Sequence record: NC_061418.1
DNA length: 64,000 nt
Strand: one strand, 5' to 3'
Shown: positions 1 to 56,855 of the stretch, in pieces
Layout: each line of letters opens with the position of its first letter
Position numbering within the stretch: position 1 is the stretch's first letter
Program-made: the position numbers and the translations under genes
Notes under the pieces: generated by a model
What the model saw: only the letters and a program-made list of their open reading frames with translations
The model's database searches: none
Told to the model about the DNA's origin: nothing

Positions 1-145
1 CAACGCCGAAAGAAAAAATGGTCAGGTCTACATTTTTATCGAGTGTAGCAATACTACTCAACGGGATATTTAATAACTGAGAGAACATTTCTGCGCTTGA
101 CTGAACAGACGTCGTTCCGGATGGTTGGATGAAATTGGTTTGCAT
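1..145 (-). CDS. Tailspike/tail fibre protein, 5' part only (runs off the window start)
   Basis: Not in the ORF track. ATG at 145 with AAAGGA upstream; open to position 1: MQTNFIQPSGTTSVQSSAEMFSQLLNIPLSSIATLDKNVDLTIFSFGV. The QPxGxTS start resembles the N-termini of Kuttervirus/Erwinia-phage tailspikes. Confidence 0.6.
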   Translation of the reverse strand, partial: MQTNFIQPSGTTSVQSSAEMFSQLLNIPLSSIATLDKNVDLTIFSFGV

Positions 146-518: not shown

Positions 519-3167
519 TTAGAGTTGAGTGATTTCAATTTCAATCCCGTAGACATTCCCCGCAACAGCAGTATCGGTGTTTTGGGACGTCCCGCGATAT
601 AAGGCTGGAGGGATAACAATGTCAAAACACTGTCCATTGTTTGCTGAGAAATATCCCGCTTGCATACCCATGTAGGTTTGTGCATAAATCGTGTTTGTCG
701 TGAAAGACGAATAAGGAGATAATGTCGTCGTATAAACACTATTTGACAGCGTAGTCTCTGCTTTTAATTTTTCGTGTTCAATGACCGAAGCAACATAACT
801 TTGACCCTGGGTACTAACAGTATACGTTCTACTGTTGACGTGGTTAGAGCCATTTATTCTGATTTCAACCTTGAAGGTACTGTTCACGGGCAAATTCGTG
901 ACCCTGATAATTCCGTTATCAGTTGTAGCCGTTGCTGTTGAGGTTAGGCTGGTTCGATAACATATACGGGCTCCCTTGGTCTGGATTGGGGAACGCGCAC
1001 CGTATGGCGAATTGCCGTAGTTACAGCGCCCATATGTATACGTACTCCCATCAGATGTCGGGTACGCAAGATTATCCCAGGCCGGATAACTGTTAACATT
1101 ACCCGCTGTAGGAACAATAAGGACTCCGTCCGTATAGCCGAATTGGTTATCATCATTTTGCCATCTAACATCAACGCAACTGTTCAATGTTTCCGTAACG
1201 AAGGTTCTGACCAACGTACCGAAGTTAGATTGTTTAAGGCCATCAAAACGGGTTTGTACTTCTCCCTGCACAAAACCAGAATAAGCCCTGACGTAGAAAA
1301 TTATTTGGGGATCGTTCGCATAAGTTACCCCTATCCAGCCGCCAACATCGAAATGACTAGAGTACATGAAGGCGCGATCAACGTTATTACCGCCACCTAA
1401 AACAACGGCTTTCGATGCCTTCCCTACCCCAGAACCAAAGTTAAAATAATAACGTTTAACTGTTGTACCGTAGAAACTTTGCCACGCCGATTTCGAATAA
1501 AAGAGGATACCTTGTAAGCAGTGACGAATGTTTAAGTTCTCTGCATAGAAGTTCTCTGTCCAAGAAATCTCGTTACAAACCACGACGGCCGCCGAAAGAA
1601 CATAACCATGTGCATGGAAGTTCTTGAGTTCATTACCCCAACCATCTGCGAACCGGACAAAGTGAAGCGGATTGACCGTATCGGTGCAATAAGCGTAAAT
1701 TCCGGACAGTTTACCTGGGTTCCAACAAGGAGCCCCTGCTACGGTATTGAAGAATTTAATACCGTAGGTTTCCCCACCTGTCTTAAACTTATGATTTAAC
1801 TGGACAGAATCCATCCCCGTCCCATCACCGCCACGAATGTGCAATGGGCATTTGGTGACGTCAACTGCGACGCTGCCATAAAACGTGTACATGGTATTGG
1901 AAGGTGGGATAGTAATCAATGTGATATTTTTCAGGCGACTGAATGCTACGGCAGCGGTAAGTGCGTTCGTAATATCAGAGCCTGCAATCACTCCGTAATT
2001 AGCGAGGTTGATTTCGTTATTGATAACAATACGTTCCCAATAATACCCGGTACCGGAAGCAATTGAACCACCGTCATCAACTCCCGCGGCGAGATGACCG
2101 ATAAAATAACCTGCTCCAGAAACACTTCCGGAGTAATAACCTTTCAGGTAGATCTTTTCTCCCTCAAAGGCAGGTTTACGTGACCGTAATGCATCAAAAG
2201 ATTCTACGCCGTAAAATCCCTGTGCGACTTGATCAAGGTTGATACCATAACTAGTGTTAATTTTGGTCGCACCAGTGCTGAGCGCTAACGTTGCCAACAC
2301 TTCCGCCGGCGTACCCGATACACTGACGGTAATCTCCGCACGGGAGCCGCCCAGAATGACTTCGACAATGTCATTCGTACTGAGTGCCTTCGCCAGCGAA
2401 ATAGTAGTGCTGTTCAATACCTCAAAGTGTTTGTTCAAGATCTGGCGGCTACCGTTAATGTAGATAGCAGTGACGGTCTTAAACGACCACGGCGGCGTTA
2501 ATGTCGTTTCACCGCCTACTGCTGCACCGTCGTTATACAACCAGGAAACATTAACATAATCAGTGATACCCGGTTCTACAGGTGTAACAGGCGTACCCGG
2601 ATAAGGGCGCGTGTATAATACAACAGTTGCACCTGCTGTCAATGGTCCTGCTAGTTTGACTTTGTTGGTTTCATTATCAAAAGTATAGTTGGTCCCTTTA
2701 ATCTGATGACTTCCGTTAAGGAACATTTCACCTATATCGAAACAATCAAAAGGGATCCCAATCTCAGTTTCACCGCCGACAGCAGAACCGTTATTGTACA
2801 CGTAAGAGACGTAAGAAGTATACGCACCAAACTGACCACCGCCAATCAATTTCCCGGTACCGTAAATGACCGCTGTACCGTTTTTGTATAAAGCGGTAGC
2901 AGAAGCTCCATTGACGTTAACGAAGGCTGCTACGTAGTGCCGAGTGTCGTCTGTGAAGACGTAGAAAATCTCGTCTTTAACGGTATTGGAAATACCGTTT
3001 GCGATGGACGAGTAAGCGTTTTCAAATAAAAGATTAGCACGGATGTCATTAAGAGAAACGCGATAAGTTTCGTTCGTTTGCCCCGCTAATGCGACGGGTA
3101 AAACTGCAGATTCAGGGACTTTCCCTGTACTGACTAATTCAGAAATCTTTTTGCTGTAATTGCTCAT
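519..3167 (-). CDS. Tailspike A: shared anchor, two XD-like branching modules, neck module and beta-helix-type body
   Basis: Start moved to the ATG at 3167 (GAGG RBS). Contains the KISEL..FENAY anchor, two YNxGxAVGGET...NGSxQ modules, the GVESFDALR..DDGGSIASG..YWERI neck, and a putative beta-helical enzymatic region. Confidence 0.85.
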   Translation of the reverse strand: MSNYSKKISELVSTGKVPESAVLPVALAGQTNETYRVSLNDIRANLLFENAYSSIANGISNTVKDEIFYVFTDDTRHYVAAFVNVNGASATALYKNGTAVIYGTGKLIGGGQFGAYTSYVSYVYNNGSAVGGETEIGIPFDCFDIGEMFLNGSHQIKGTNYTFDNETNKVKLAGPLTAGATVVLYTRPYPGTPVTPVEPGITDYVNVSWLYNDGAAVGGETTLTPPWSFKTVTAIYINGSRQILNKHFEVLNSTTISLAKALSTNDIVEVILGGSRAEITVSVSGTPAEVLATLALSTGATKINTSYGINLDQVAQGFYGVESFDALRSRKPAFEGEKIYLKGYYSGSVSGAGYFIGHLAAGVDDGGSIASGTGYYWERIVINNEINLANYGVIAGSDITNALTAAVAFSRLKNITLITIPPSNTMYTFYGSVAVDVTKCPLHIRGGDGTGMDSVQLNHKFKTGGETYGIKFFNTVAGAPCWNPGKLSGIYAYCTDTVNPLHFVRFADGWGNELKNFHAHGYVLSAAVVVCNEISWTENFYAENLNIRHCLQGILFYSKSAWQSFYGTTVKRYYFNFGSGVGKASKAVVLGGGNNVDRAFMYSSHFDVGGWIGVTYANDPQIIFYVRAYSGFVQGEVQTRFDGLKQSNFGTLVRTFVTETLNSCVDVRWQNDDNQFGYTDGVLIVPTAGNVNSYPAWDNLAYPTSDGSTYTYGRCNYGNSPYGARSPIQTKGARICYRTSLTSTATATTDNGIIRVTNLPVNSTFKVEIRINGSNHVNSRTYTVSTQGQSYVASVIEHEKLKAETTLSNSVYTTTLSPYSSFTTNTIYAQTYMGMQAGYFSANNGQCFDIVIPPALYRGTSQNTDTAVAGNVYGIEIEITQL

Positions 3168-5074: not shown

Positions 5075-7288
5075 TTACCAACTAGAAAGAGCAGCTCTTA
5101 CCCAAGTATTAGTTGCAATACAAACGTAGTAATAACTACTATCAGCCGCCCATTGTCCTACAGTACCGGGAGCTGTTGCATTAGCAGGTACTGCGACTTT
5201 AACGCCAACTGGATTCCCTGCCACGGTAACGGCTCTTGAAAAATAACCATCCCGCCACTGAAGAGCACTTGTCCCAAAATCATAAAGGTTCGTCGCATTA
5301 GGGACTACTGTCCCCATGAAGTTGAACTGACTGGCGCCTCCGTTAGCAACAAAATTCATACCGGATAAATAACTGGTTAATGTCATCGGTCCGGTGTTAC
5401 CAAGTAAGATTCTACCCCCTAAAGTCGTGTTACCGTAAGGATAAAAATCCAGTCTCCTGTCTCCACTTGTAGTGTTATTATTTCCTATTTGGAGAATATT
5501 ACCACTGGAGATAGAGGCTGTTGTTTTAATAAGGTAACCGCTTATCGTCCCATCCTGAGCCACCGAAAGAATAGGTGTTGTCGGGTTGAAAGCACCATCT
5601 GTATTGGTGTAATAAATAGAAAGGGCGCTGTTATTATCGCTATCCACATCGATAATAAATTTTCTCGTCGCTACTTTGACGTCGTTAATGATCAGGCCGC
5701 TAGTAATTCTTCTCGTAAAGTTATTGATGGCGCAGTTTATCAGCTGATAAGCTCTTTTACCTTGTGTACTAGCGCTGACGTCAAAGATAGGGGCTACTGT
5801 AGAGTTACCGGAAACTTCAGAGAATGCGCTGGAGAAATAACAGCTATCGAAAACACGCCCGGTATTAGTACTTGTACCAAATCTAATCATTGGTACGTGG
5901 ACAGCGCTGTCATAACCAACTGCGGACTTCCTTAAAGTTTGGAAAGTACATCCAGTGAATTTAATAATCCCTTGGTTGATGAATCCTAATTCGTAAGTGC
6001 CCGCTGAATCTGTTCCGCCAGAACCATTATCGGTAAAAATTACTGTATCGAAATTAAACTGCGTACCGCCGCCCAAATTAAACCATTTTGCACCGTAGAA
6101 GTGAGTCTCAATATGACCGCCTTCAAATTTAATGTTGTGGTGCGTACTGGAGGTAGGAGTTGGGTCTACTTTAATAGCTACGTAGTTTTTAGTGTACGTC
6201 GTTTCAATGTGTGGCCTGATGAACACAATGTTGTTGGAGTTGTCCGTGGCCTGAGGTAAGAAATGAATCCCTGTCGCAGGATTGTTTGTATCATTATCAT
6301 CAACGGCAACAAACCCAGTCATGTAGATACAGTCGAAAACCGCATCGTAACACTGACCGAATGTTAAAGCTTTAGTGGGCGACATGAAGTTAAGGTTTGA
6401 AAATCTTCCACCAACAGCCATTGAGTTAGCGGTTACTTCACTTCCGAGTTTAATGTAATAAGCAAAAATGCCCGGTTCTTTAATAAACGTTAACCCGTCC
6501 ATTTCAAGGCGCCCGCCCGTGAAAGTAAAGAGAAAATCTTTATTCACGTTAGAAGAAATATAAGCACCTTTTCCTAGAATCCTAAACCTTGGTTTTCCAG
6601 TCTCATAGCTGATAGCGCTTAAGTCTTTAACTATTTTACTGTCGAGTCGATATTTACCTGGCGGGAAAAATAACCACCCCGAGGCATATCGTTGAGCGTT
6701 AGAGATATTGATTTCTTTTTGATAAATACATTTATCTATTGCTGCGCTAACTGCCGGAGACCAATCCCAAGTAGAGGGGTCATTAGGATTATCTTTTTTG
6801 GTGACTAGACTTGAAAACTCCCAAATATTGATAGGTAGGCTATTTAATGCTTTAGCCGCGCTCTCCGCGCTTAACTCGATCTCTTTACGTTGATAGCCAA
6901 CTTCATCAGCTCCATTATTAGACATAATTCCATCAACGTCACCACGTATTACTTTTATACCGTAACCGGTATAATTAATTTTAGCAGTACCGTCCGAGTT
7001 AAAAATCTGTTCTGCAACTCCGTTGCGGTTGACATATGCTTTAACTGTCGTTTTTTCTGCATCGACATAAACGTAGAAAATTTGATTAGGGACAGTACCC
7101 GCAAGACCCGCTACTGTCGTAGTGAATGCGTTTTCGAAATTTAGCAGGGAGCGTAAATCAGAAATCTCCATCGCTTTAGATTCGGTTATTCCCGCTTCAT
7201 TCTGAGCGATAAATACGACATCAGAATCATTTACCGGTTTCGATGGTCGATCCATTTCACTGAGTTTTACAAAGATCTCACTGGCCAT
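5075..7288 (-). CDS. Tailspike C / depolymerase
   Basis: Shared anchor (KLSEM..FENAF); pectate-lyase-3-like start (DWSPAVSAAI...LFFPPGKY); C-terminal PANATAPGTVGQWAADSSYYYVCIATNTWVRAAL motif typical of phage fibre trimer modules. Confidence 0.85.
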   Translation of the reverse strand: MASEIFVKLSEMDRPSKPVNDSDVVFIAQNEAGITESKAMEISDLRSLLNFENAFTTTVAGLAGTVPNQIFYVYVDAEKTTVKAYVNRNGVAEQIFNSDGTAKINYTGYGIKVIRGDVDGIMSNNGADEVGYQRKEIELSAESAAKALNSLPINIWEFSSLVTKKDNPNDPSTWDWSPAVSAAIDKCIYQKEINISNAQRYASGWLFFPPGKYRLDSKIVKDLSAISYETGKPRFRILGKGAYISSNVNKDFLFTFTGGRLEMDGLTFIKEPGIFAYYIKLGSEVTANSMAVGGRFSNLNFMSPTKALTFGQCYDAVFDCIYMTGFVAVDDNDTNNPATGIHFLPQATDNSNNIVFIRPHIETTYTKNYVAIKVDPTPTSSTHHNIKFEGGHIETHFYGAKWFNLGGGTQFNFDTVIFTDNGSGGTDSAGTYELGFINQGIIKFTGCTFQTLRKSAVGYDSAVHVPMIRFGTSTNTGRVFDSCYFSSAFSEVSGNSTVAPIFDVSASTQGKRAYQLINCAINNFTRRITSGLIINDVKVATRKFIIDVDSDNNSALSIYYTNTDGAFNPTTPILSVAQDGTISGYLIKTTASISSGNILQIGNNNTTSGDRRLDFYPYGNTTLGGRILLGNTGPMTLTSYLSGMNFVANGGASQFNFMGTVVPNATNLYDFGTSALQWRDGYFSRAVTVAGNPVGVKVAVPANATAPGTVGQWAADSSYYYVCIATNTWVRAALSSW

Positions 7289-7447: not shown

Positions 7448-9493
7448 ATGACCGATATCACTGCATTGAAAATCTCTGAACTATCGCCCAGTTCTAATCC
7501 GTCAGAGAATGCGTTTCTTCCGCTCTCAGAAGCGAACGGAATCGCTTCTGAAAAAGTCAGTATTGGTACCCTCAGAGAAACGTTAGGTTTTGAGAACGCG
7601 TACAGCACGATTGCTGGCGCGCTCAATGTAACTACGGAAGGGAATGTTTTCTTTGTTTACGAAGACAGTACGCGAGACTATGTTTTGGGGTATGTAAACC
7701 AAGGGAACGGAACCTATTCTGCATTAATGTCAGACAGTACGACACAAGTTCGCTACGCGACGAATGCGCATATTGTCAACTCTTTATTCATGTTACAAGG
7801 AGTAGAAAGTTTCGATGCGTTACGTACCCTCAAACCGTGGTACGAAGGACAACGTGTCACGTTGAAGAGTTACTACAAAGACGGGGTTACGGGTGCTGGT
7901 ATCTTCATTGCGCGTTTAGGAGTAAATGCAGATGACAACGGCACGATTGCCGCGGGGAACGGATTCTACTGGCAACGGATTATTTCTGATAAGTTGTCTT
8001 TTGAGGACTTTGGTGCAGTCGGGGGCGGCGTACTGGACGATACTAGTAATATTCAAAAAGCGGTCAACTACTGTGCCAAAAATGGCATTGCACTAACGTG
8101 TTTAGGGAAAGTATACGCGGTCAGTACCGTAAATTTCCCAACCGATTTAGTGATCGATATGCGTAATGCAGTACTTTTGTCGCTGCCCTCTGTTACGACG
8201 GGTTATACCTTAACAATCAGCGGCTATTTGTCACCTGCGGCTAATCCAGGGAAATTTGATAATATTCGCGTTCAGCGTACCTTAATTAATACTCATCAAC
8301 CCGACACTAACAGTGTCGTAGACGGCGTGTCATTTGGTGTCGATGCGCACAATATTTCCTTCTACAATCTTAAGGTCTCTGGGTTTAGGGACGGGGTTTG
8401 TTTTAACGGGAAGAGTGCTTACCTCATTCGTTTATACAGCCCAATCATCGGACAATGTTGGCGCCGAGGGATGGCCTTTTATGCGAATACTGATTCTAAT
8501 GAGAACGTGACTATTTACGGTGGCGTGATTGCAGATTGTTGTAATTTTACTTTCGACGGTACCGGGCTCTACTTATCAGGGAGTGCCTCGAGTATCGATG
8601 TCAGGTTCTTTGGAACCAGTTTTGATTATTGCGACATCTCAGTTGATATTTATCAGTCTAACGTCGAGCTCCACGGTTGTCACTTGGAAAACAATAACAA
8701 CAACCCTCATATTCGACTTTCGTACACCTCAACCAAAAACCAACCCTATCTGATCATGAAAGGGGGAACAATGGGCGGCGGACCGAACGCGAACTCGTGG
8801 AGCGGTATTCCGATAGAAAATAGTACGGGTCGCCCTTACCTCGTCTTCATTACTAACACTGGCGGTGCCCACGTAGATATTGATGGAACTGACACCAGTA
8901 AATACATGACAGGAGTCAGGAGAACTACCGAGATCGTAGGTGTAGAAGGGGATAACTACCAGTTGATCGGGACCTTAAGGGTGAGGAACAAAATGACCTC
9001 TGGAAACATGGATAACGCCAGCCGCCCCATGCGACCTTGTAGTGCTCTTAACGTGATTCTGATCAACCAGTATCAAACTGCCGCATGGACACCGAGTTAC
9101 ACTAACGCAGACCTAACTTATACGATTGATACTACGAATTACTCTAACCCTAATTCACCGCACTCACGAAAAATTACACAAGGAAGCGTACGTAACGTCT
9201 CTTACTGGCAGGACGTGACACTGCGCGGCGGAGATATCTTCCACGCGGAGGCCGAAATCAAAATTACTTCGTTGACGGCTGGTTACGTCGCACTTCGAGT
9301 GGATTTTTACGACTCTGCCGGGAACGTAATACAATCGTCAATCAAATCTGTATCTGCGGTGACGACCGATTGGAATAACGTGTGGGTCTGGTTACGTGCG
9401 CCAAACGGTACAGTCAAGGCAAAAGTTCAAGAGTACTTAAACGGCTTTGTTGGAACAGCATATTTCACCAATGAACACGTTTGGATTTCTTAA
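7448..9493 (+). CDS. Tailspike D / depolymerase with C-terminal carbohydrate-binding-like module
   Basis: Start moved to the ATG at 7448 (GGAG RBS). Anchor, neck, FEDFGAVGGGVLDDTSNIQKA (Pectate_lyase_3-like), and a C-terminal CBM-like beta-sandwich (WQDV...LRVDFYDSAGNVI...TDW...APNG). Confidence 0.88.
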   Translation: MTDITALKISELSPSSNPSENAFLPLSEANGIASEKVSIGTLRETLGFENAYSTIAGALNVTTEGNVFFVYEDSTRDYVLGYVNQGNGTYSALMSDSTTQVRYATNAHIVNSLFMLQGVESFDALRTLKPWYEGQRVTLKSYYKDGVTGAGIFIARLGVNADDNGTIAAGNGFYWQRIISDKLSFEDFGAVGGGVLDDTSNIQKAVNYCAKNGIALTCLGKVYAVSTVNFPTDLVIDMRNAVLLSLPSVTTGYTLTISGYLSPAANPGKFDNIRVQRTLINTHQPDTNSVVDGVSFGVDAHNISFYNLKVSGFRDGVCFNGKSAYLIRLYSPIIGQCWRRGMAFYANTDSNENVTIYGGVIADCCNFTFDGTGLYLSGSASSIDVRFFGTSFDYCDISVDIYQSNVELHGCHLENNNNNPHIRLSYTSTKNQPYLIMKGGTMGGGPNANSWSGIPIENSTGRPYLVFITNTGGAHVDIDGTDTSKYMTGVRRTTEIVGVEGDNYQLIGTLRVRNKMTSGNMDNASRPMRPCSALNVILINQYQTAAWTPSYTNADLTYTIDTTNYSNPNSPHSRKITQGSVRNVSYWQDVTLRGGDIFHAEAEIKITSLTAGYVALRVDFYDSAGNVIQSSIKSVSAVTTDWNNVWVWLRAPNGTVKAKVQEYLNGFVGTAYFTNEHVWIS

Positions 9494-9804: not shown

Positions 9805-11763
9805 ATGTCTAATGAAACACAGAAAATTAGCGAGTTGCTCAATACGTCCATCATTTCAGAGAACACTATTCTTCCCGTAGTTGCTGCTGAAGGTGAGACC
9901 AATTCCATCGATATTATCACTTTACGCTCGGCGTTGTTATTTGATAAAGCGTTTGAGACTAACGCAGCGGGTAATGCAGCGACTAGTAAAAACGATTCTT
10001 ATTTTGTTTATACCGATGCCACCAAAACAGCCGTATTGGGCTGGATGAACCAAGGCGGGGATTCTTACTCGCCTCTCCTCGATATTAATGGTGCACAAAT
10101 CCGTTTTATTGCAGGTCAAACTATTCGAGGTCTGGATTATTTCACAAATGGAGTTAACTCGTTTGCGGATCTGAGAACACTGACTCCGTTGTATTCCGGG
10201 CAACGCATTAAATTAAAGGCTTGGACAGCGGGAGAAAAGACAGGCGGCGGTGAATTTATTGCTGTCTTCGGAACTGCGACTGACGATGCGGGCACTATCG
10301 CGGCCGGAAACGGCTTTTATTGGGAAAGAGTGATCAATGGTGGGCTAAATCCAGAGATGTTTGGTGCTATCGGAAACGGTGTAGTTGACGACAGTAATAG
10401 TTTATCTAAATTTCTACTGGCTTTAGCAAATAGAGCCAAATATTTAACCCCAATAACATTTGTTCCGGCCATAGGTTATCTCAACGGTATCTATAGAATA
10501 ACAAAGACTATTACTGTAGATGGCGGTAAAGTAAGATTAACTACCAACACTGTTGGTTGCATCTTTTGTGACCCTACAGGGACTTACGAAAGTACCGGAT
10601 GTATTAAAGTAACCAATAATTACCTTAACTCTGCTTTTGTTGGACAGTACGCAGCACTATTTGAAAATATTTCTTTCGTCAGTACAGGAAGAACACTCAC
10701 CGCAATTTACGCTGTGAGGGGAGATGCTGTGAGCGGTAATAACGGTGCGTGTCTTCATAATGTTTTTAAATGTTCGTTTAAAGGCTTCAGTAAAATTTTT
10801 ACACATGGACCTGGCGGTTGGGGTTGGAACTGGGCAGGTTGTCAATTTTCTGATAGTACCAATTTGATGGTAATTGAGGATCAAGACGACACTTATGAAA
10901 GGCATAGTTTTGATGGATGTATTTTCCAAAACGGAGGGGTTGCATTTACAATAAATAACCCCGATGGGAAAGTCTATTGGAAAAATGGTTCTATGGACTA
11001 CTGCACCGGCGCAGCTACAATTACCGCCGGTTTCATAGAACTTAATGGTCATTTCGAGTGGACAGCCAGAACCGTAGATTTCATTACACTTTTATCAAGT
11101 AATGCGGCTGCTTCTATCTCGGGTGCAATGTTTATTCGTAACAATACTTCTGGTTCTACCTATTACGTCATTAATCAATACCAAGATAAGCAAGTAAAAG
11201 TAGATAATTTGGTCGTTATATCTGACGGTAATTACATTGCCAATGGAGTACTCTCAAATAGAGAGTTGTTAAAGGGAACAATTTTTGCGCAGAACGACGC
11301 GTCTAAATCTGTGCTCTATCACTCCTCTGATGAAAATCTGATATCGGGAACTACGTCTTACCCTCAAGTAACTTTAACTAACACCACTCAGTTTTCTTAT
11401 TCGGTGGCTGATGGTTCTTTGACGATTAGTTGTTCTGCGGGCGGACAAAGTGGTTTTCTTTACTTAGATGTCCCGGTAAATAATAAAAAATTCTACGCTT
11501 ATAAAATGACGGCGAGTAATACGTCTAATGGTTCTGTGTTCCTAGAAAAAACCGTATTGAATGCAAATAAAGATACGATAAGAACCGATACCAGTTCAGG
11601 TACTACCAGCTGGGCAGCAGGCTCTAGTTCGGTGGCAGGAGGTACTGTGACTCTTTTATCTTTACCTGCGGCGGCGGCTTTTATACGAATTAGATTTAAT
11701 CTCTCAAGTATGACAACAGGAAGTACGTTTACTATCAGTTCATTGAAAACTTTCACTTTTTAA
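9805..11763 (+). CDS. Tailspike E / depolymerase
   Basis: Start moved to the ATG at 9805. Anchor (KISEL..FDKAF), neck, PEMFGAIGNGVVDDS (Pectate_lyase_3-like), beta-helix repeats and a C-terminal beta-sandwich. Confidence 0.88.
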   Translation: MSNETQKISELLNTSIISENTILPVVAAEGETNSIDIITLRSALLFDKAFETNAAGNAATSKNDSYFVYTDATKTAVLGWMNQGGDSYSPLLDINGAQIRFIAGQTIRGLDYFTNGVNSFADLRTLTPLYSGQRIKLKAWTAGEKTGGGEFIAVFGTATDDAGTIAAGNGFYWERVINGGLNPEMFGAIGNGVVDDSNSLSKFLLALANRAKYLTPITFVPAIGYLNGIYRITKTITVDGGKVRLTTNTVGCIFCDPTGTYESTGCIKVTNNYLNSAFVGQYAALFENISFVSTGRTLTAIYAVRGDAVSGNNGACLHNVFKCSFKGFSKIFTHGPGGWGWNWAGCQFSDSTNLMVIEDQDDTYERHSFDGCIFQNGGVAFTINNPDGKVYWKNGSMDYCTGAATITAGFIELNGHFEWTARTVDFITLLSSNAAASISGAMFIRNNTSGSTYYVINQYQDKQVKVDNLVVISDGNYIANGVLSNRELLKGTIFAQNDASKSVLYHSSDENLISGTTSYPQVTLTNTTQFSYSVADGSLTISCSAGGQSGFLYLDVPVNNKKFYAYKMTASNTSNGSVFLEKTVLNANKDTIRTDTSSGTTSWAAGSSSVAGGTVTLLSLPAAAAFIRIRFNLSSMTTGSTFTISSLKTFTF

Positions 11764-11770
11764 CAGACAT

Positions 11771-11798
11771 AGACAGAGGAGCAGAAGCTCCTCTGTCT
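11771..11798. terminator. Terminator between convergent genes
   Basis: Perfect 12-bp stem AGACAGAGGAGC/GCTCCTCTGTCT followed by TTATTTT. Confidence 0.85.
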
Positions 11799-11806
11799 TA
11801 TTTTCT

Positions 11807-12373
11807 TTATTCGTCGGTTTGTTCAACCAAAATGAATTTGCTGTCTTCGGTGTTAATCGCTTTACCGGATTCGGTAAGCAGAGAACCACGAGGAATCTTA
11901 CTACCGCCACTACACGTGACGTCAAGGTTACCTGACCAAACGTGACTATTATAAGTCGTACCAGCTTTGGTCTGGATAGTCACAACCGCGGTTTCTCCGG
12001 ACGGAATGAACGGCAGGTAATCGTCCGCATTCGCAATATCTTCAACGTCAATATAGAGACTGTATTTTGCTTTGATCAACGGTAAAAGATCAGCGATTGT
12101 CGATGCTGTTTCCGGCAGGACTAAAGTAGGGCCAACCGACGCCATCAGTTTGTTCAGTTCGATACGGGTGTAAGTAAAGGTCTTACTCCCGGTTACCGGA
12201 GAACGACCTGTAACGAGCACGGAGACACGATCTTCTGTACCCGGTACCGTAGAACCAGTGATGTTACCAAAGCTCAGGTAGCTGGCGTTGAGCGGCGTAG
12301 TGAGGTTATTCTGCTGACTGATCAGATCAGCGAGAATCTCGTATTTGGGACGACCGAATAAATCGACGTACAT
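11807..12373 (-). CDS. Virion structural protein, putative tailspike adaptor
   Basis: 188 aa. The N-terminal ~150 aa resemble the small domain seen in phiKZ-like virion proteins (TFTYTRIEL motif); C-terminal LLTESGKAINTEDSKFILVE motif. Confidence 0.6.
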   Translation of the reverse strand: MYVDLFGRPKYEILADLISQQNNLTTPLNASYLSFGNITGSTVPGTEDRVSVLVTGRSPVTGSKTFTYTRIELNKLMASVGPTLVLPETASTIADLLPLIKAKYSLYIDVEDIANADDYLPFIPSGETAVVTIQTKAGTTYNSHVWSGNLDVTCSGGSKIPRGSLLTESGKAINTEDSKFILVEQTDE

Positions 12374-12422: not shown

Positions 12423-12809
12423 TCACCAAATCGGCTCGCCACGATCAATAAACTGAATTCTTTCTTTTCTACAGAGTTTTTCTAAGATATCTTTTAAGAG
12501 GTGACGATGACAGAAGCAGTCGTGTTTACAATAGCAGGCTAAACAAATTCGTTCCTGATTAATCAACCACAGCCACGGTTCCGGATTTTTGATAAACCGT
12601 TCACGGGTCAACCGGTAATAGATATCAACGTATTCCGCTTCACTGACAATGCCTTGCTTAAATGGCCAGAGTAATTCTGGAGTGGGTGCAAAGTCTTTTA
12701 TTCCGCTTTTTAAGGTGGTATCGACAAAGACAATATCCAGTCCTTCCCAAACTCGCCAATCTGGTATTCTGCCTGTCCATACTTCGAGTTGCTTGAATGA
12801 ACGAAACAT
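12423..12809 (-). CDS. DUF488-like protein
   Basis: Start moved to the ATG at 12809 (GGAGGAG RBS). FAPTPELL..FK..Y and LACYCKHDCFCHRHLL motifs match the DUF488 pattern. Confidence 0.7.
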   Translation of the reverse strand: MFRSFKQLEVWTGRIPDWRVWEGLDIVFVDTTLKSGIKDFAPTPELLWPFKQGIVSEAEYVDIYYRLTRERFIKNPEPWLWLINQERICLACYCKHDCFCHRHLLKDILEKLCRKERIQFIDRGEPIW

Positions 12810-12873
12810 CTCTCCTCCGTTCAATGAAACCAAAAAAAACAATGAGACGATTAACCTGCTTAGGTCAAAAGAC

Positions 12874-13395
12874 CTAAGCATAGAAGTTTAACCATTCCAG
12901 AAAACGCCGGCTGCGTTTTTCGATATTCCCCTCAACTGGGTATCTTGATGCGTAATCTTCGTTGAGGGTCAGCGGATAAAACTCCGGGTCTCTCTCGGTG
13001 GCGTACATTAAATGGAGTACGTAATGCCGAGTCCCGTAAACGTCCAGGAAGGTCCAGAGTACATAACGTTGAAATGCGTGCTTAAACGTATCCAGTCTCA
13101 GCTTTTTGAACAGTCGATAAAATTCCGTGATATCGATTTTAAGCGCTTCGAGACTGGTGACCTGCACCGGGACACCGAGTTGAAGCGATAACCGGAATCC
13201 CCGGCAACGATATTCCCTCGCATTCATTCCCAGATATTCAATGATCAGTTTAGACCCGATGCGTTTATACGTTATATCCGTGGTCGCACGTGTCGTTTCA
13301 CCTACACGTCTACCGAAGGTGGTGGTGTCAATTCGATATTTTGCCAGGTCTTCTACGGCTTTCAGAAAGGACAATTTACTGACTTTGAGGCGCAT
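12874..13395 (-). CDS. Hypothetical protein
   Basis: 173-aa ORF with a GAGAG RBS; same strand as its neighbours. Confidence 0.7.
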   Translation of the reverse strand: MRLKVSKLSFLKAVEDLAKYRIDTTTFGRRVGETTRATTDITYKRIGSKLIIEYLGMNAREYRCRGFRLSLQLGVPVQVTSLEALKIDITEFYRLFKKLRLDTFKHAFQRYVLWTFLDVYGTRHYVLHLMYATERDPEFYPLTLNEDYASRYPVEGNIEKRSRRFLEWLNFYA

Positions 13396-45249: not shown

Positions 45250-45627
45250 TTATGACACTGCCGACAACGAATGCATGTTGACAATATTTTTCAGTTCCTG
45301 ACGAAGTGTGAACTCGCCATCCTCCACGCCTTCTTTTAACCAGCGGGGGATCATCTCTTCGAAGTAATTAGCGACCTTTTCGTGCGGTAAGGTTCTAATC
45401 GCTTCGCACTGTTTTTCATCCCAAAGAATCTCAGGGAGAATCGTACCTAGCAATAATCCTTTGGAATCCGTTGTCAAGTTTAAGCGACGATTCATACTCG
45501 AAGCTAATCGTTGACATCCACCCGAACGACCAGAGAGTAGCGTGTAAAAAGAACCCAATATTAAAACACGTCGACCTTTCGTCGTAAAGAGTTTAGGTCC
45601 GAAGACCGCTAAAAGTATTTTGATCAT
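45250..45627 (-). CDS. Hypothetical protein
   Basis: 125 aa; ATGA overlap with the RNase H stop. Confidence 0.7.
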   Translation of the reverse strand: MIKILLAVFGPKLFTTKGRRVLILGSFYTLLSGRSGGCQRLASSMNRRLNLTTDSKGLLLGTILPEILWDEKQCEAIRTLPHEKVANYFEEMIPRWLKEGVEDGEFTLRQELKNIVNMHSLSAVS

Positions 45628-47282
45628 AGTTTACCCGTGATCTCAAAAAGGTTAGAATTGAGCGACGCAGTAAACAGCGTGTCACCGTCCACTTCCATTA
45701 ACGTGGCGTAACGGAAAGCACGCGTGCCATCTGGCCATGTGATGACGCGTATTCTGAGGTCTTCAGAACCCAACGCGTTGACCGTATTCCTTAACGGGAT
45801 ATCTTGTCCTATTTTTAATTTGATTGTGGCTTTCCCTGTTGTCCCGTCAGCCAGTTGGTAATTAGCTGTAACAGAAATTGCCTTATTCGGCGGGTCCATG
45901 GCCTCAGTGGGTTTTGTAACAGGTTTCTTTTTCCCTTCTTGGGTCGTCTTCACACAGTATGAAGTGATATCCGTGATCGTCGTTTTTCCCTTGCCTGTAA
46001 ACCCGTATCCTAACATGGTCAGAAGTGTCTCAAACCGCGTCAACAGACGGAAACCTAAAAAGGTCGGTCTCAGCTCCTCAATAAGCGCAACTTTATCCGG
46101 AGACCGGATAGTGCTCTTCTCGGCGTCGTCCCATAAGACAGAACGTTTGTCCTGTATCAGACTGACGTATCGATCTGCGTTAAGGATATTTTCAAGATGA
46201 CCCAGCGTCATGATCTGAGTGCCGTCGTAGTACCGGCTCTTCAGAAACTCTCCGAGTAATTCCAGGACAGGTTCTTTTTCCTTAGCGAAGAGGATGGCTA
46301 CTTTAGCAGTGGCAGTGGCCTTACCGATCATGTCGACTTCGGTGTCGTTACCGTGGTTCCCGAAGAAATAAACGTAGCGATCGTCATAGTCAACTTTGTA
46401 ATGTGTCCGGTCAGTTAACGCATACCACCAACGTTGTTCCAGTAAGCGATTACTGGTTTTGGTGTTTTGTACGTATCCTTTACGGTCTGAAATGAGATAA
46501 ACGGTTTTACCGGGTTCATCGCGTTCCAGAATCATTCCGCGGTTGGCGTTGTAATCAGCACGTTCATTCCCTGTATAACCAGCGTGACCTGGGATATACC
46601 CAAATAACATTCTGGTTTTCCCTTCCTCAACAATACTGTCGAAGAGAGAACAGAGCAATTGCCAAAGATCTTTGTTTTGGACAGGTCGACGGTCAGCAGT
46701 TAACCAACCGTTTCTTTCCCAGTTAACACGATAGAAAAGTAACCCTTCTAAAACATATTTCGAGTCCGCAAAAATAACAGACTCTTTTGGGCTCTTTTCT
46801 TTGACAATTGTGAGACTGTTTAACATCCCCATTAACTCAGTAAAGTTATTACTGGTTTTGTACTGACCACCGTATGCATCAATAAAGCTGATGGGGTTGA
46901 CAGGCTTCACCGTTTTATTTTCATCGGCGTGTAAGATAAGATAGTTTTTATCTACCTGCCCAGTGAAGCCCGTCTCTTCATCTGCCTTAGTGACGACATC
47001 TTTACACCGGTGTTGTCTACCGTCGACATAACCGATGTTAGTAAACGCACCCTTAGCCTTTTTAATCTTCGCTTCTTTCTTGTCCGCAACCGGGTACGAA
47101 TATCCGTGAATGCCCCAGCCAGAAAGTAACGTTTGGGTATTACTTCCGCCGTCGCAGAATAAAACAAGATTAAAACTGCCCGGTTCTGGGAATTCACCTT
47201 CCCACGGTTGCTCAATCTTCATGTTCAGAAGTTCCTGTTTCAAAGTATGTTCAGAAGAATAAAGCGTCGCGTAAGAAATCAA
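45624..47282 (-). CDS. rnhA: Ribonuclease HI with long C-terminal extension (phiKZ gp155-like)
   Basis: FCDGGS, SNNFTELMG, ADSKYV, NKDLW, GHAGYTGNERAD. Start is either the TTG at 47282 (coupled) or the ATG at 47222. Confidence 0.92.
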   Translation of the reverse strand: MISYATLYSSEHTLKQELLNMKIEQPWEGEFPEPGSFNLVLFCDGGSNTQTLLSGWGIHGYSYPVADKKEAKIKKAKGAFTNIGYVDGRQHRCKDVVTKADEETGFTGQVDKNYLILHADENKTVKPVNPISFIDAYGGQYKTSNNFTELMGMLNSLTIVKEKSPKESVIFADSKYVLEGLLFYRVNWERNGWLTADRRPVQNKDLWQLLCSLFDSIVEEGKTRMLFGYIPGHAGYTGNERADYNANRGMILERDEPGKTVYLISDRKGYVQNTKTSNRLLEQRWWYALTDRTHYKVDYDDRYVYFFGNHGNDTEVDMIGKATATAKVAILFAKEKEPVLELLGEFLKSRYYDGTQIMTLGHLENILNADRYVSLIQDKRSVLWDDAEKSTIRSPDKVALIEELRPTFLGFRLLTRFETLLTMLGYGFTGKGKTTITDITSYCVKTTQEGKKKPVTKPTEAMDPPNKAISVTANYQLADGTTGKATIKLKIGQDIPLRNTVNALGSEDLRIRVITWPDGTRAFRYATLMEVDGDTLFTASLNSNLFEITGKL

Positions 47283-47704
47283 GGGTGACGGCGTTGAAAT
47301 TCCTCAATGATGTGATGGCTTTGGGCGTCGCACGCGCTGGGCGTCTTGGTACAAATTCTCTGGAGTTCAGAGAGTTCCAGACGGGCGTCATTTTCCCAGC
47401 CAAATTTTTCCATGGTCAACGTATGAATATCGGCTTCATAACGATCGCGGCTGATTCCTGATACCGGTTGATTACTGGCATCGGAAAGACGTTTTAACGC
47501 GGCATTATAATTACGATATAATTCACGGTATTTGACATAACCTACCGTTGACGACAAACCAAGAGTGAAAATTAAAATGGTTATTATCGTACGATAGAAG
47601 TAACGCTTCCTTTTCGGGGGTGGTTCTCTGGTATTATCCAAACGGTATTGCTCCCGTATGAAATAATACAAGTACGGTAAAAAACGCAAGAAAAAGTAAT
47701 TCAC
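47279..47704 (-). CDS. Single-pass membrane protein (holin/antiholin candidate)
   Basis: Basic patch KRKR, then a TM (TIITILIFTLGLSSTVGYV), then a soluble domain with a CxxxxxxC pair. Confidence 0.55.
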   Translation of the reverse strand: MNYFFLRFLPYLYYFIREQYRLDNTREPPPKRKRYFYRTIITILIFTLGLSSTVGYVKYRELYRNYNAALKRLSDASNQPVSGISRDRYEADIHTLTMEKFGWENDARLELSELQRICTKTPSACDAQSHHIIEEFQRRHP

Positions 47705-47763
47705 GGCGGTACCTCCGCTGACAGGTTCTTTTCCTGTTTAATAATAATTATGGAGTAGAAACA

Positions 47764-49065
47764 ATGTTGAATGTGTATAGTTTTGTAACTATTAAAAATT
47801 TTATCAATAACGCAGTGGGACAGACTGCAAAAGTAGGTGAACTTACCACCCACGGTGAAACCTACAGCACAGACGTAGGGACATATTCTGTTGCCGATTA
47901 CACCGATGTCATTTTAAAGACGCTGTCTGTCACCCGCGACGGTACCAAAAGTAATCTAGGGTTGACTTACTACACGCAGATCCTGGAAGTCTCACAGTGG
48001 CTCTATCAGCGAAGCATTAATGGTCTGATCACCACAGACACCGCCGCACTACTTCAGAACCTGAACGCGCAGTTTTCGGATTACCTCACTGTAAAATCAG
48101 TTGGGGCAATTGTCAACAATGGATCATATAATTTTCCTTCTAATCTCCAAATGTCCTTTAGTAACTCTGGGGAAGAGAACGAACTGTTTGTCTGGTACGC
48201 GATCGATAATTTCCTGGTGGAATATCCGCTTTATGAACTTAGCGTCGTAATGCCGTTTGATGACATTGATCTGTTGGTTGGTGATTCTGACGCTGCGGTG
48301 GCGGCGATCAAAGCTATTACCCCGGTGAGTAACACCGCACGCATCACGAACGCTATCGGTCAGAACCCGCAGACGGATATCTGGACCGGCTACTTTACGT
48401 GGGTGGCAAAAGATAACGACGAAGTCACGTTGCAAATTCCGATCAACGTCGTGATCTACGGGTCTGCCGGTAAGAACCTTGATTACATCAAAAACGCGAT
48501 TCGTGAACATATCCTAGGGAACAGCACGGCAGGTACTGACACGTGGGAGATTGTATTACCAGATCTCTTTACACCGACTGAATATTACGTGGTGCCGGTT
48601 TGGGACAGAATCTCTCTCCCTAATCAGCTGGATACTACCGCGCTCTATTCCCCGGTGTTACCGTATAAGGATTTCCTGACTTATACCGATAAGTACATGG
48701 CGGACTATGAACAACAGCATGTCATTGACGCTGGGGAAATTGCGTTTAACACGTATCAGAACCTTCAGCTCTTGGTTTGTGGTCACGTAAGGAACTATAA
48801 CGTTTCCTACGTCTTCTCCGAACTCTGGCCGCGCTATGCAGCAATCGCACCAACCAGCTCTGAATTCGGTAAGATTCCAGAAGCGACCCGAAACTTCATT
48901 ATCAACTTGATTGCGCTTCTGAAGATTGCAGAAACGGCAACGGCTACTTCTATCCTGCCGACAGGATACACTCGTGCCACGCGTAACGGGGTGGTTTACA
49001 TCACCATGACGGTCAATACCGTTCAGTATCTGGTTCCGGTGAAAAACGGTTTCAGTAAGGATTAA
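47764..49065 (+). CDS. Virion structural protein (phiKZ gp157-like by position)
   Basis: 433 aa; GGAG RBS; first gene of a plus-strand pair between RNase H and SbcC. Confidence 0.65.
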   Translation: MLNVYSFVTIKNFINNAVGQTAKVGELTTHGETYSTDVGTYSVADYTDVILKTLSVTRDGTKSNLGLTYYTQILEVSQWLYQRSINGLITTDTAALLQNLNAQFSDYLTVKSVGAIVNNGSYNFPSNLQMSFSNSGEENELFVWYAIDNFLVEYPLYELSVVMPFDDIDLLVGDSDAAVAAIKAITPVSNTARITNAIGQNPQTDIWTGYFTWVAKDNDEVTLQIPINVVIYGSAGKNLDYIKNAIREHILGNSTAGTDTWEIVLPDLFTPTEYYVVPVWDRISLPNQLDTTALYSPVLPYKDFLTYTDKYMADYEQQHVIDAGEIAFNTYQNLQLLVCGHVRNYNVSYVFSELWPRYAAIAPTSSEFGKIPEATRNFIINLIALLKIAETATATSILPTGYTRATRNGVVYITMTVNTVQYLVPVKNGFSKD

Positions 49066-49070
49066 AACGA

Positions 49071-49670
49071 ATGGCTAAGACACGTAACACCCCTGCCTTA
49101 GGGTTGAAAGGGAAATGGTCATTAATACAACCGTGGACCGCCAGCCAGTCGTTAATTTATCAATGTACCGCTATTCGTTTCTTTACCGAGATGGTAGCGG
49201 AAGGGATTGATATCTTTAACGTCTACTATTCTCCTAAGGGCCTCACGGAGTCTGACTATAACGCAGACCTGTCTGCTGGCGCGGCGATGTGTGTACTGTA
49301 TTCGTCCTCTGGTAGTGTCATTACGGTTCCCGATACCTACATTGAAACTTTCCCGGGGATCGGGATGTCGAACTGGGGGCAGGTGATCCTCTCTGCGTCT
49401 TTGGGTCCGATGCGTTTAGACCTCGATTACTCGTTCTTGAAAGAACAGATGGGCAACTTGATCTCTGACACGATCGGCGTTGTTCCTGAGATCTACGTAG
49501 ATCAACTGGCCACAATTGAAGCGATCAGTACGGAAGAGGCAGACGCGATCGAAGCAGCGAGACTGTCAGCTATCACCAATCGCACGTCGACCTACGCGCA
49601 GAACTTGGCGCTACAAAAAGAGAACGCTGAGTTACGTATCAAGATTCAGGCGTTATTGGCAGCAAAATAA
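49071..49670 (+). CDS. Probable virion structural protein
   Basis: 199 aa, 5 nt after the previous stop; C-terminal coiled coil. Confidence 0.6.
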   Translation: MAKTRNTPALGLKGKWSLIQPWTASQSLIYQCTAIRFFTEMVAEGIDIFNVYYSPKGLTESDYNADLSAGAAMCVLYSSSGSVITVPDTYIETFPGIGMSNWGQVILSASLGPMRLDLDYSFLKEQMGNLISDTIGVVPEIYVDQLATIEAISTEEADAIEAARLSAITNRTSTYAQNLALQKENAELRIKIQALLAAK

Positions 49671-51372: not shown

Positions 51373-53844
51373 TCAGTAAAATTCAGCCACGGTGTTGACA
51401 CCGTCTTTAGGGTGACGGAAATCAAAGTCAATGATGTCCGAGAAAGGCAAAGCGCCATGCGATACTGCGTGATGCGAAATCAAGAACACCTGTGAGAATC
51501 GCCCGTTCTCAACACCGCGTGTAATGAACTGCATCAGTCTCGCTTTGTGCTCAGGCGAAAGAGGGCGGTCGACTTCGTCTAAACAGAGTGGGACATTGTT
51601 CAGGTTCAGGTAGAGCATCGCTGTGATCTGAAACGCGAAATCAATGATCTTCTGTTGACCGTCTGACCCAGTCCGCATATCCGGTACAATGTAATCGTCG
51701 GAGTCATGGAGACGTAACGGGAACTCGTACGACAGATCACTGTCGTTTGGCTTCCCAATTAACAGTTCCATCGAATGCGTCCAGATATCCGCAATGACTT
51801 CGTTGACCTGACCGATAAAGACTTTGATAAATTCGTTCATCTGCTCGGCCACTGCCCCTGACTTTGGTGACAGTGTCCCAACCAACAGACGGTAACAATC
51901 CACTTTCTCTTTTTGTTTCTCCAGTTGTTTCCGGGTATCGTTAATCTGGTCTTCCAGTGTCTTGGCATCATTAAGGGTTTTGGTCAATGTGCCAATATGA
52001 CCCTGTAAGTCCTGAATGAGCAGTAAACGGGTTTCGTTGAACAAGTATTGAATACCACTGACAGTATCCTTGACCAGTTTTTCGTAGTTACCCGTGACTG
52101 CCTCGACAGCGTTGGTATATTGGTCAGCCAGATTCAACCCTCTTTCGTAGAGTTTTCCTTCCTCTTTAGAACGCGCTAATTCGCTATAGATGTCCTCCAG
52201 CGTCTCTTTGACTTTGACGAAACGTACTCTGACTCCATCAATCCCGGTGACGACGTTCTCTTGTAATTGCGAAAGCACTAATTGCGCTTCTCGTAATTTA
52301 TTTTTTGCCCGATATACCTCAAGGTGTTTTTCCAGGTCTTCTTTGAGTAACAACATCACCTGGACGGCTCGTAACGGTTCGTCTTTTAACGTGACTTGTT
52401 TATCCAATTGAGCAAAAAGACCTTTGGCGGCAGGGGCTTGGTTCCGCAGTCCTATCAAATTACGGTACTGGGACAACCACTGTTCAACCTCTTCAATGTT
52501 CCGTTGGTTTTCGGCAATGGCCTTTTCACCCTGTATCATGCTCTCCTTGAGTTCCTCTGCCTGCTTAGTTAACCGCGGGCGTGAGTCCGAAGATACTCCA
52601 GGGATAAACTGAAAACGACATTGTGGACACTGAACTTCTTTCCCTTGATTGATGTGGTCAATCTGCTCTAACGTTTGCGCGTACTTAGCAGAGAGGCTAT
52701 TGTAATGCTCCTGGAAACGCTGGCGGTTATTCAAGAGTATTTCGTAGCCTTGTCGAGTAAACCGTCCTTCTGGGTCAGGTTGAATTTCCGTCAGGGTTTT
52801 TGACCACTCCGGGAAGATCATGGCGAGTTGTTCTAACGCCATTTCCAGAGTGGTCTCTTCGATGGCCATTTCTGGGGCGTAGAGCTTTTCCAGTGACGCC
52901 TGTTGAAACTGCCGATCCCAATGATTCACTTCGTTACGCAACCGTGCTAAGTTTTCTTCACTGGCATCGGCATTCCGTTTTAGTATCAGTTCCAGTTCGT
53001 CATATTCTTCCTGTAATGCCTTCTTACGCGTTTCTAAACCAAAGACATACTCTTTTAGCTTATTTATCTTTTCAAGCCATAGAGAGCGATTGGTGGCGTT
53101 TAACGGGGTATCTGGTAATTGTTTTAAGGTTTCTTTTATTTGTTGGGGCAATTGTTGCCACTGGTACTGGATTCCGGCGGAGTCTTGACTGCGGTTTTGC
53201 TCCTCATTGTAATCCTTTAATACCTCAGTAACGATACTTTGGTATTCCGTCAGACGAGCGGTAAGAGTGGTTCTCTCGTCGTCAGACATTCGTTGGGTTT
53301 CTTTTTCTGCTAACGACTCCTCTAGCGCATTAACTGCGCCGATAGAGTGTGACAGTTTCTTTCTGGCTTTACCGAATAATGAGTTAGCGAACGACATATC
53401 GGAATCGGCCAAGGCAGTTAATACTTCCTGGCGTTTTGCCGCGCCGGCACCAGAGAATGAGAACTGCCCTGCCTGGATCATCGCGGAGAGTTTATCAACC
53501 GCCAGATATTTCTGCACCAGATCTTTTTGAACGGTAGAAGTTCCGCCGTCGTTTAGGTTTTCCCCGTTCAACCAAAACTCGTGTTTAACATCACTGCCGA
53601 CAATGGTTTTCGTTTCAATTAACCCGTGATCAGTTTCTAACAAAAGGCGAGAGAAACCATTTTTATCGAACATGTTAGACGCAGAAGGGAAAGCCGTGAT
53701 TTCGTCTAAGAGTGCAGATTTCCCAAAACCGTTGGGGCCGATGATAATTTGATAAGGACTTTTTGGTTTGTAAAGGATACGCTCAATCAACCCGGATCGC
53801 AGGCGCTTGTTATGAGAAATTTCGGTTTCAATCACTTTGATCAT
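51373..53844 (-). CDS. sbcC: SbcC/Rad50-like SMC ATPase (phiKZ gp165-like)
   Basis: Walker A GPNGFGKS, Q-loop QAGQF, zinc hook CPQC within the coiled coil, signature GSDGQ, Walker B LCLDE, H-loop ISH. Confidence 0.93.
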   Translation of the reverse strand: MIKVIETEISHNKRLRSGLIERILYKPKSPYQIIIGPNGFGKSALLDEITAFPSASNMFDKNGFSRLLLETDHGLIETKTIVGSDVKHEFWLNGENLNDGGTSTVQKDLVQKYLAVDKLSAMIQAGQFSFSGAGAAKRQEVLTALADSDMSFANSLFGKARKKLSHSIGAVNALEESLAEKETQRMSDDERTTLTARLTEYQSIVTEVLKDYNEEQNRSQDSAGIQYQWQQLPQQIKETLKQLPDTPLNATNRSLWLEKINKLKEYVFGLETRKKALQEEYDELELILKRNADASEENLARLRNEVNHWDRQFQQASLEKLYAPEMAIEETTLEMALEQLAMIFPEWSKTLTEIQPDPEGRFTRQGYEILLNNRQRFQEHYNSLSAKYAQTLEQIDHINQGKEVQCPQCRFQFIPGVSSDSRPRLTKQAEELKESMIQGEKAIAENQRNIEEVEQWLSQYRNLIGLRNQAPAAKGLFAQLDKQVTLKDEPLRAVQVMLLLKEDLEKHLEVYRAKNKLREAQLVLSQLQENVVTGIDGVRVRFVKVKETLEDIYSELARSKEEGKLYERGLNLADQYTNAVEAVTGNYEKLVKDTVSGIQYLFNETRLLLIQDLQGHIGTLTKTLNDAKTLEDQINDTRKQLEKQKEKVDCYRLLVGTLSPKSGAVAEQMNEFIKVFIGQVNEVIADIWTHSMELLIGKPNDSDLSYEFPLRLHDSDDYIVPDMRTGSDGQQKIIDFAFQITAMLYLNLNNVPLCLDEVDRPLSPEHKARLMQFITRGVENGRFSQVFLISHHAVSHGALPFSDIIDFDFRHPKDGVNTVAEFY

Positions 53845-53915
53845 TTATTCGTACCGTAACAAAAAGTGGACTCTATTACAATAGCCGGAAAAGTGAAAAA
53901 TAATAAGGGGACTTA

Positions 53916-54905: not shown

Positions 54906-54909
54906 AAGG

Positions 54910-54937
54910 AGACTGGAGGACGAAAGTCCTCCAGTCT
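54910..54937. terminator. Terminator between convergent genes
   Basis: Stem AGACTGGAGGAC/GTCCTCCAGTCT with a GAAA tetraloop. Confidence 0.85.
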
Positions 54938-54943
54938 GTGATG

Positions 54944-55474
54944 TCAACCGTAAATCACATCCACTAATGTAATATTACGCAAGTTCTTTCCGTCACCTTT
55001 GTCAGATCCACCGCCGTATGCCCAGACTGTGATTCTTTCACCGGCCGCGAATGAACACGGTAAAACAGGGGAACGTTTTACCCCGGAACCCGACGGGGCA
55101 TCCCAGGACCAATCACCCGGTCGAGTTTGGTTCGCACCGTATTTACCTCCAGAACCGTGCCATCCGCCCTGGTTACCATCGAGGGTAATGTCGATGACCA
55201 CGCCCACGACTCGCTTCGCTGTCGGGAGATCCCAATACGTGGAGTAAACCGAGTTACCCCAAAGAACCCCGCCGATAGAACCGCTTCGTCCACCTTCGTG
55301 CGTGCTGTTCCAGAAACTCTGCGGAAGATCGATCTTATCCCACAGTGGTTGCCACACACCGCCATTAACTACCCAGGCATTATCAACACGATGCCAACTT
55401 CCGCCGTTAACGATCCACGGAAGATCAACACCACGCCAGCCGCCACCATTGACTAATCTAGGGTAACTACGCAT
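54944..55474 (-). CDS. Putative fibre-tip adhesin / tip protein
   Basis: Three tandem VNGGxW repeats at the N-terminus; Gly/Trp-rich C-terminal domain; directly downstream of a fibre gene. Confidence 0.5.
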   Translation of the reverse strand: MRSYPRLVNGGGWRGVDLPWIVNGGSWHRVDNAWVVNGGVWQPLWDKIDLPQSFWNSTHEGGRSGSIGGVLWGNSVYSTYWDLPTAKRVVGVVIDITLDGNQGGWHGSGGKYGANQTRPGDWSWDAPSGSGVKRSPVLPCSFAAGERITVWAYGGGSDKGDGKNLRNITLVDVIYG

Positions 55475-55487
55475 TTACTCTACTCCC

Positions 55488-56843: not shown

Positions 56844-56855
56844 TTTAAACCTCGC

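Follow-up and report, generated by a model that had tools for sequence, protein, structure and literature searches.

Klebsiella phage KpLz-2_45 encodes a small protein, gp102, which we interpret from its sequence, with a probability of about 0.6, as a two-part virion adaptor: an N-terminal DUF7941 domain would sit on the rim of the baseplate, and a short C-terminal tail would dock tailspikes that begin with a KISEL-type module. A partnership of tail and module is the simplest reading, because the KISEL module is the only constant neighbour of proteins carrying this tail. Gene order in four chimallivirus genera agrees with the adaptor interpretation, as does the place that the homologous domain of phiKZ takes in the baseplate.

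The gp102 gene and its DUF7941 domain

The analysed stretch of DNA (the window, 64,000 nucleotides) corresponds, with a 100% match, to bases 62001-126000 of the KpLz-2_45 genome (NC_061418.1, 296,707 bp, genus Siatvirus). The phage is a close relative of phiKp24/FBKp24, a jumbo phage with 'hyperbranched' tail fibres. The features of the gp102 locus, in window coordinates, are as follows.

11807-12373, minus strand: gp102 coding sequence, 188 aa plus stop, ATG start, annotated as 'virion structural protein' in NC_061418.1
11909-12349, minus strand: DUF7941 N-terminal globular domain, residues 9-155, proposed virion-anchoring part (Pfam PF25613, E 1.8e-16)
11822-11887, minus strand: putative C-terminal docking tail, residues 163-184 (22 residues), three 8-residue repeats h-h-T-E-x-G-x-x
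11771-11798, unstranded: inverted repeat with flanking T/A runs forming a G+C-rich hairpin, between the stop codons of gp101 and gp102

The initial annotation described a 188-aa gene convergent on the tailspike array, and the open reading frame is indeed real and faces the tailspike gene gp101 (9805-11763, plus strand). To judge from its sequence, the hairpin between the two genes is probably a two-way terminator. Over its full length gp102 matches phrog_2935; the adjoining gene (12423-12881, minus strand) encodes a DUF488-N3a-like protein (Pfam E 1e-7, phrog_2450).

The phiKZ-type virion domain proposed earlier for gp102 is recovered as a Pfam DUF7941 match of 60.8 bits (cut-off 27), in which residues 9-155 align with positions 7-152 of the 276-position profile. 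An AlphaFold2 model built on 13 sequences is of moderate quality (pLDDT 63), with the last 25-30 residues poorly defined. Its sole Foldseek match below 1e-3 is to 9XQD chain 0, which represents the phiKZ gp127 N-domain (E 1.1e-5, probability 1.0, TM 0.57 on the target). At the sequence level, PHIKZ127 is likewise detected by a DUF7941 profile (E 2.7e-14). The phiKZ protein is located in the outer peripheral baseplate (PMC13250141, PDB 9XQD), where, in each star lobe, the gp139 band of the fibre-attachment platform terminates in one gp127 (PMC13250141). Virion membership of gp102 itself is known only via homology, by analogy with the Goslar mass spectrometry and the phiKZ map; a literature search found no virion proteome of KpLz-2_45 or phiKp24, and the RAY proteome paper does not list the gp102 orthologue. 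A PDB search with the gp102 sequence returned only noise, and neither sequence nor Foldseek comparison detected a T4 gp10-like XD branching fold.

In phage Goslar, DUF7941 proteins consist of an N-domain, a linker and a C-domain and are abundant in virions; gp22 was shown to form filaments, and AlphaFold 3 modeling led to the proposal that each protomer uses its linker and C-domain to dock on the N-domain of the following one (bioRxiv 10.64898/2026.04.21.720040). Six DUF7941 genes are present in KpLz-2_45: two encoding proteins of ~690 aa, three encoding forms of 289, 179 and 382 aa, and gp102. The 289-aa full-length form adjoins the 179-aa short form, and this pair is likely equivalent to Goslar gp22/gp23, the 179-aa paralogue being a better gp23 equivalent than gp102. 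The canonical linker motif h-x-x-h-h-x-x-x-x-L-x-G-L-x-Y-P is shared by the Goslar proteins with the 289-, 382- and 179-aa paralogues, whereas an alignment with these proteins revealed neither this motif nor the C-domain in gp102. The feature typical of Goslar gp23, an N-domain followed by the canonical linker, is accordingly missing from gp102, whose tail is of another type; conversely, no short DUF7941 protein of the tail type was found in Goslar. Since the linker is absent and T-E-x-G repeats stand in its place, gp102 represents a distinct DUF7941 subtype and not simply a filament subunit.

Other members of the family differ in architecture. The 382-aa paralogue starts within the window and runs past its end (62926-64000, minus strand; record 124926-126074), and four or five tandem canonical linker motifs of the G-L-x-Y-P type lie between its N- and C-domain; judged by this arrangement, several DUF7941 N-domains could attach to it simultaneously, which would make it a branching hub. 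In the two ~690-aa proteins (record 45438-47507 and 47524-49566, minus strand), a DUF7941 N-domain is fused to a β-helix body, and they would appear to be spikes mounted via the DUF7941 system and not via a KISEL start.

The C-terminal repeat tail

The C-terminal string reported in the initial annotation was correct, except that three further residues (T-D-E) follow it; in all, four poorly conserved residues come after the tail. The tail is acidic and has low pLDDT in the monomer model. A repeat-tail class was defined here by the presence of two or three repeats of 8 residues that lie no more than 15 residues from the stop codon; gp102 belongs to this class and aligns without gaps with 27 C-terminal tails, its one deviation being T-E-D-S in place of T-E-D-G in the second repeat. 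The suggested search for further LxTExG motifs in the genome was carried out, and the strict pattern h-x-T-E-x-G-x-x-h-x-T-E was found only in gp102, once among all six-frame ORFs of the 296.7-kb genome against 0.008 occurrences expected from composition. With a tail profile built without chimallivirus rows, the gp102 C-terminus ranked 1st of 2034 genome frames (12.1 bits), the modest E-value of 0.011 reflecting the shortness of the motif. No chain carrying a canonical tail was found when the PDB was searched with the tail profile.

The tail is retained in all 12 of 12 orthologues (65-98% identical) and is conserved to the same level as the folded domain. It is also kept in the RAY-group orthologues, whose whole proteins are 28-31% identical to gp102; in the RAY orthologue, the tail is ~50% identical compared with 28% overall.

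Pairing of tail and KISEL genes across IMG/VR

To analyze the genomic context of the tail, IMG/VR was scanned with a degenerate DNA pattern for the tail alone, which yielded at least 118 stretches, and 80 loci were examined. Among the matches listed, the motif is in nearly every case read in frame within a long ORF, usually at the far C-terminal end: it falls within 15 residues of the stop in 40 of 64 motif-bearing ORFs. Again among the matches listed, 38 of these 40 ORFs have a same-strand gene no more than 150 nt downstream, and the downstream product begins with a KISEL-type start in 32 of 38 cases by regular expression, or 35 of 38 once three start codons were corrected by eye. As a control, the same expression matches 28 of 659 other ORFs (4%) of the same loci. 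The initial annotation had held that LxTExGxxLxTE motifs and KISEL-type N-termini co-occur in phage virion proteins, either adjacent or fused. Adjacency is strongly borne out by these counts, whereas fusion is not: in the loci examined, neither an in-frame tail-then-KISEL fusion nor a protein combining a KISEL start with a C-terminal tail was present.

When clustered, the proteins with a C-terminal tail fell into at least 15 unrelated families, and a KISEL gene follows in 11 of these. Among the carriers are T4 gp15-like sheath stabilisers of the neck and a baseplate wedge protein whose gene lies downstream of gp25- and gp6-like genes; others are a LysM hub-like protein, an FII-like head-tail joining protein, a Phage-tail_3 protein and, in a siphophage, a tail protein encoded behind the tape measure. 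Because so many carrier families are unrelated to DUF7941, this domain is not the general partner of the tail. The proteins encoded after the carriers have only their first ~40 residues in common, and the coding segments of tail and KISEL module usually lie no more than about 100-150 nt apart, across one gene boundary, so that the two halves would be able to move together.

In two IMG/VR loci (L036 and L051), a T4 gp15-like sheath stabiliser with the tail is followed by a small KISEL-type protein, which suggests that neck fibres may be mounted by the same peptide pair. In a search for cultured relatives, the gp15-like carrier matched cyanophage genes, mostly ending short of the tail; the siphophage tail protein gave one partial match (Elizabethkingia phage TCUEAP3, 39% coverage), and the baseplate-wedge carrier gave none.

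KISEL-type spikes of KpLz-2_45 and orthologue synteny

The KISEL-type N-terminal modules of the tailspikes near gp102 map to the window as follows.

9805-9939, plus strand: KISEL-type N-terminal module of tailspike gp101, candidate partner of gp102 (motif and profile)
7448-7582, plus strand: KISEL-type N-terminal module of tailspike gp099
7154-7288, minus strand: divergent KISEL-type module (K-L-S-E-M) of tailspike gp098, with a weak profile score
4865-4999, minus strand: KISEL-type N-terminal module of tailspike gp097
3033-3167, minus strand: KISEL-type N-terminal module of tailspike gp096

The seven or eight KISEL proteins of the genome come from the set gp091, gp096, gp097, gp098, gp099, gp101, gp232 and gp245. 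When KpLz rows were left out of the KISEL profile, seven KISEL proteins were still among the top matches of the genome, always through their N-termini; one short spurious frame fell between them in the ranking. In addition to its KISEL start, gp096 carries T4 gp10-like branching modules: residues ~103-286 match solved branching regions, including CBA120 TSP4-N (E 2.6e-11).

All KISEL spikes share an anchor module of ~105 residues (window 9805-10134 in gp101), which ends in a D-G-turn hairpin (alignment columns about 100-112) whose pattern resembles a single tail repeat. A further protein with a KISEL-type start, gp245 (207 aa; record 266306-266929, minus strand; locus L023:6306-6929), contains a nine-residue stretch identical to the first gp102 tail repeat, with 24 of 27 bases identical and 5e-6 such occurrences expected by chance. 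The orthologues of gp245 show the consensus L-h-x-E-(S/T)-G-x-A-h at this stretch, and a low-confidence model places it in the folded hairpin of the anchor module, with residues 1-51 disordered. The stretch was considered as a second tail and rejected, since both orthologues and model assign it to the anchor-module hairpin; gp245 may be a cap, or a small protein that is itself mounted through KISEL. In gp090, gp093 and gp094 the N-terminus is of a third kind, the Q-P-x-G-x-T type, which is neither KISEL nor DUF7941 (window 1-145, minus strand, for the gp094 start, and record 52953-59796). Added to the KISEL and DUF7941 types, it brings the anchor classes of KpLz-2_45 to at least three.

The neighbouring KISEL spike in KpLz-2_45 is convergent with gp102 and not downstream of it. 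The Moabite orthologue lies directly upstream of four KISEL-type spikes in a row. RAY, where the pair is gp215/gp216, and three related contigs have a single KISEL-type tail fibre gene, and the orthologue immediately precedes it. Eowyn encodes five short DUF7941 proteins with degenerate acidic tails, and four of the five genes are immediately upstream of a KISEL-type spike gene.

Proposed docking mechanism and alternative explanations

Combining these observations, we hypothesize that the DUF7941 N-domain of gp102 seats either on the outer baseplate rim or on another DUF7941 protein located there. The 22-residue tail, which would form three short strand-turn repeats, takes the place of the linker and C-domain of the family and belongs to a widespread, portable class of C-terminal peptide, found on virion proteins that are to carry a fibre. 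Its partner would be the ~40-residue KISEL-type N-terminal module of trimeric fibres and tailspikes, with strand pairing as the probable mode of contact. The low model confidence of the gp102 tail and of the gp245 KISEL module is as expected of peptides that fold on a partner. We infer the physical contact between tail and KISEL module, as well as the choice of spikes bound and their copy number. In this way, gp102 could convert one docking system (DUF7941) into another (KISEL), so that a DUF7941 site would receive at least one of the seven or eight KISEL-type proteins. The initial annotation further supposed that the number of paralogous adaptors could set tailspike stoichiometry. This is not supported in KpLz-2_45: there are six DUF7941 paralogues, one tail and seven or eight KISEL proteins, and none of the five other paralogues bears a gp102-type tail. 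One tail for so many KISEL proteins means that other docks are needed, and the T4 gp10-like branching modules of gp096 could hold some of the spikes.

Extending the adaptor model, tail and KISEL module may constitute a general, portable peptide-to-peptide docking code, by which a tail on any virion protein mounts the matching fibre. We advance this wider claim tentatively, at somewhat short of an even chance; judging by the carrier proteins, the mounting sites would comprise the neck, wedge, tail tip, head-tail joint and DUF7941 rim.

The tail could instead be a variant of the DUF7941 plug that docks on another DUF7941 N-domain, so that gp102 would link or cap head-to-tail filaments of the kind proposed for Goslar gp22/gp23 and phiKZ gp126/gp127. 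The AlphaFold 3 models and gp22 filaments of the Goslar preprint (bioRxiv 10.64898/2026.04.21.720040) lend this idea a precedent, the six paralogues offer possible sockets, and MAFFT aligns the tail with the final hairpin in the C-domains of full-length DUF7941 proteins. This placement, however, is an end-anchored alignment of a short peptide, and gp102 lacks the canonical linker that its 289-, 382- and 179-aa paralogues retain, while the 179-aa protein beside the 289-aa one is the better candidate for a gp23-like role. As the same class of tail also occurs in many phages without DUF7941, we regard a plug variant as quite unlikely. It is also unlikely that the KISEL anchors dock on the branching modules of gp096 or on other baseplate proteins, leaving the tail to self-associate gp102 or to bind an assembly factor. 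Such an arrangement would agree with the match of gp096 to solved branching regions and with the 8-residue period of the tail, which would also suit a trimeric β-structure, and in KP32-type phages experiments have proven that a branching domain pairs with an N-terminal docking peptide. Nevertheless, the KP32 docking peptide is of a different sequence type, and in RAY, whose one tail and one KISEL fibre are neighbours, branching is not needed; docking on branching modules would also leave unexplained why KISEL genes follow unrelated tail carriers in 11 of at least 15 families.

Finally, the pairing could arise at the DNA level, with the two peptide-coding segments serving as a linker for recombination where a structural gene meets a fibre cassette, and the proteins making no contact. 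The usual distance of ~100-150 nt between the segments, at a boundary where fibre cassettes exchange, would be compatible with this. Yet the conservation is seen at the peptide level, across families that have no detectable DNA similarity, and the tail-coding end of gp102 in KpLz-2_45 adjoins no KISEL-coding start although its tail is conserved, which renders a purely DNA-level explanation very improbable.

Comparison with known systems

Adaptor-mounted tailspikes and DUF7941 host-recognition networks are already known or proposed. In open-access papers, preprints and the PDB, we found no paper or solved structure describing the tail/KISEL pairing or a DUF7941 protein with such a tail, and neither the Goslar preprint (bioRxiv 10.64898/2026.04.21.720040) nor the phiKZ atlas (PMC13250141) describes a gp102-type tail or its pairing. 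The study of phiKp24 only guessed at spike mounting from N-terminal lengths. How jumbo phages with multiple depolymerases mount their many spikes is a question to which a defined adaptor would offer a testable answer, and gp102 in this role would link the newly described DUF7941 network with classical tailspikes. A short, transferable pair of fibre-mounting peptides would also be a practical handle for host-range engineering and would help to annotate fibre attachment sites in uncultured phages.

The nearest relatives of gp102 are the DUF7941 proteins of chimalliviruses (Goslar gp22/gp23, phiKZ gp126/gp127), with which it has the N-domain in common by both Pfam match and fold. These are virion proteins of the outer peripheral baseplate, with several paralogues per genome, some of them fused to sugar-cutting domains, and their C-terminal part acts as a plug. 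In gp102, by contrast, a T-E-x-G repeat tail stands in place of the canonical linker and C-domain, and this class of tail also occurs far outside the chimalliviruses, beside KISEL fibres. The tailspike cluster of Eowyn resembles that of KpLz-2_45 in containing short DUF7941 proteins with acidic tails, which in Eowyn are encoded directly upstream of spikes sharing a K-K-(I/L)-(S/T)-D-L-P start. The two differ in that Eowyn has five adaptors with degenerate tails, alternating with spikes, and KpLz-2_45 a single adaptor with a canonical tail.

In crAss001, the N-terminus of the fibre protein gp22 is held by a small hub, THA2-THB (PMC10172136, PDB 7QOJ). This fibre is the only match of the KISEL profile among solved structures, and the match is weak (E 0.02) and lies beyond the modelled residues 1-26. 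The THB protein (gp39, locus L154:23706-24050) ends in two T-E-D units with 8-residue spacing followed by an aromatic residue, and its C-terminus is like the gp102 tail but without glycines; the THB and gp22 genes are not adjacent, and the crAss001 paper (PMC10172136) contains no statement that the THB tail touches gp22. The hub is the only structural lead for a contact between tail and KISEL module.

The closest functional parallel is a branching domain paired with a conserved docking peptide, as in KP32 gp37/gp38, K11 and KP34, in G7C gp66/gp63.1 and in CBA120 TSP2/TSP4. In these systems, a short N-terminal peptide is the sole mounting element of the secondary tailspike, acts via a dedicated partner, and is modular and transferable. 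The tail/KISEL pair would extend this principle, just validated in podophages, with a different receiver: in the branching-domain systems, a T4 gp10-like domain that is folded and forms part of another spike receives a peptide of a different sequence type, whereas in KpLz-2_45 the receiver would be a 22-residue C-terminal peptide on an adaptor that is not itself a spike.
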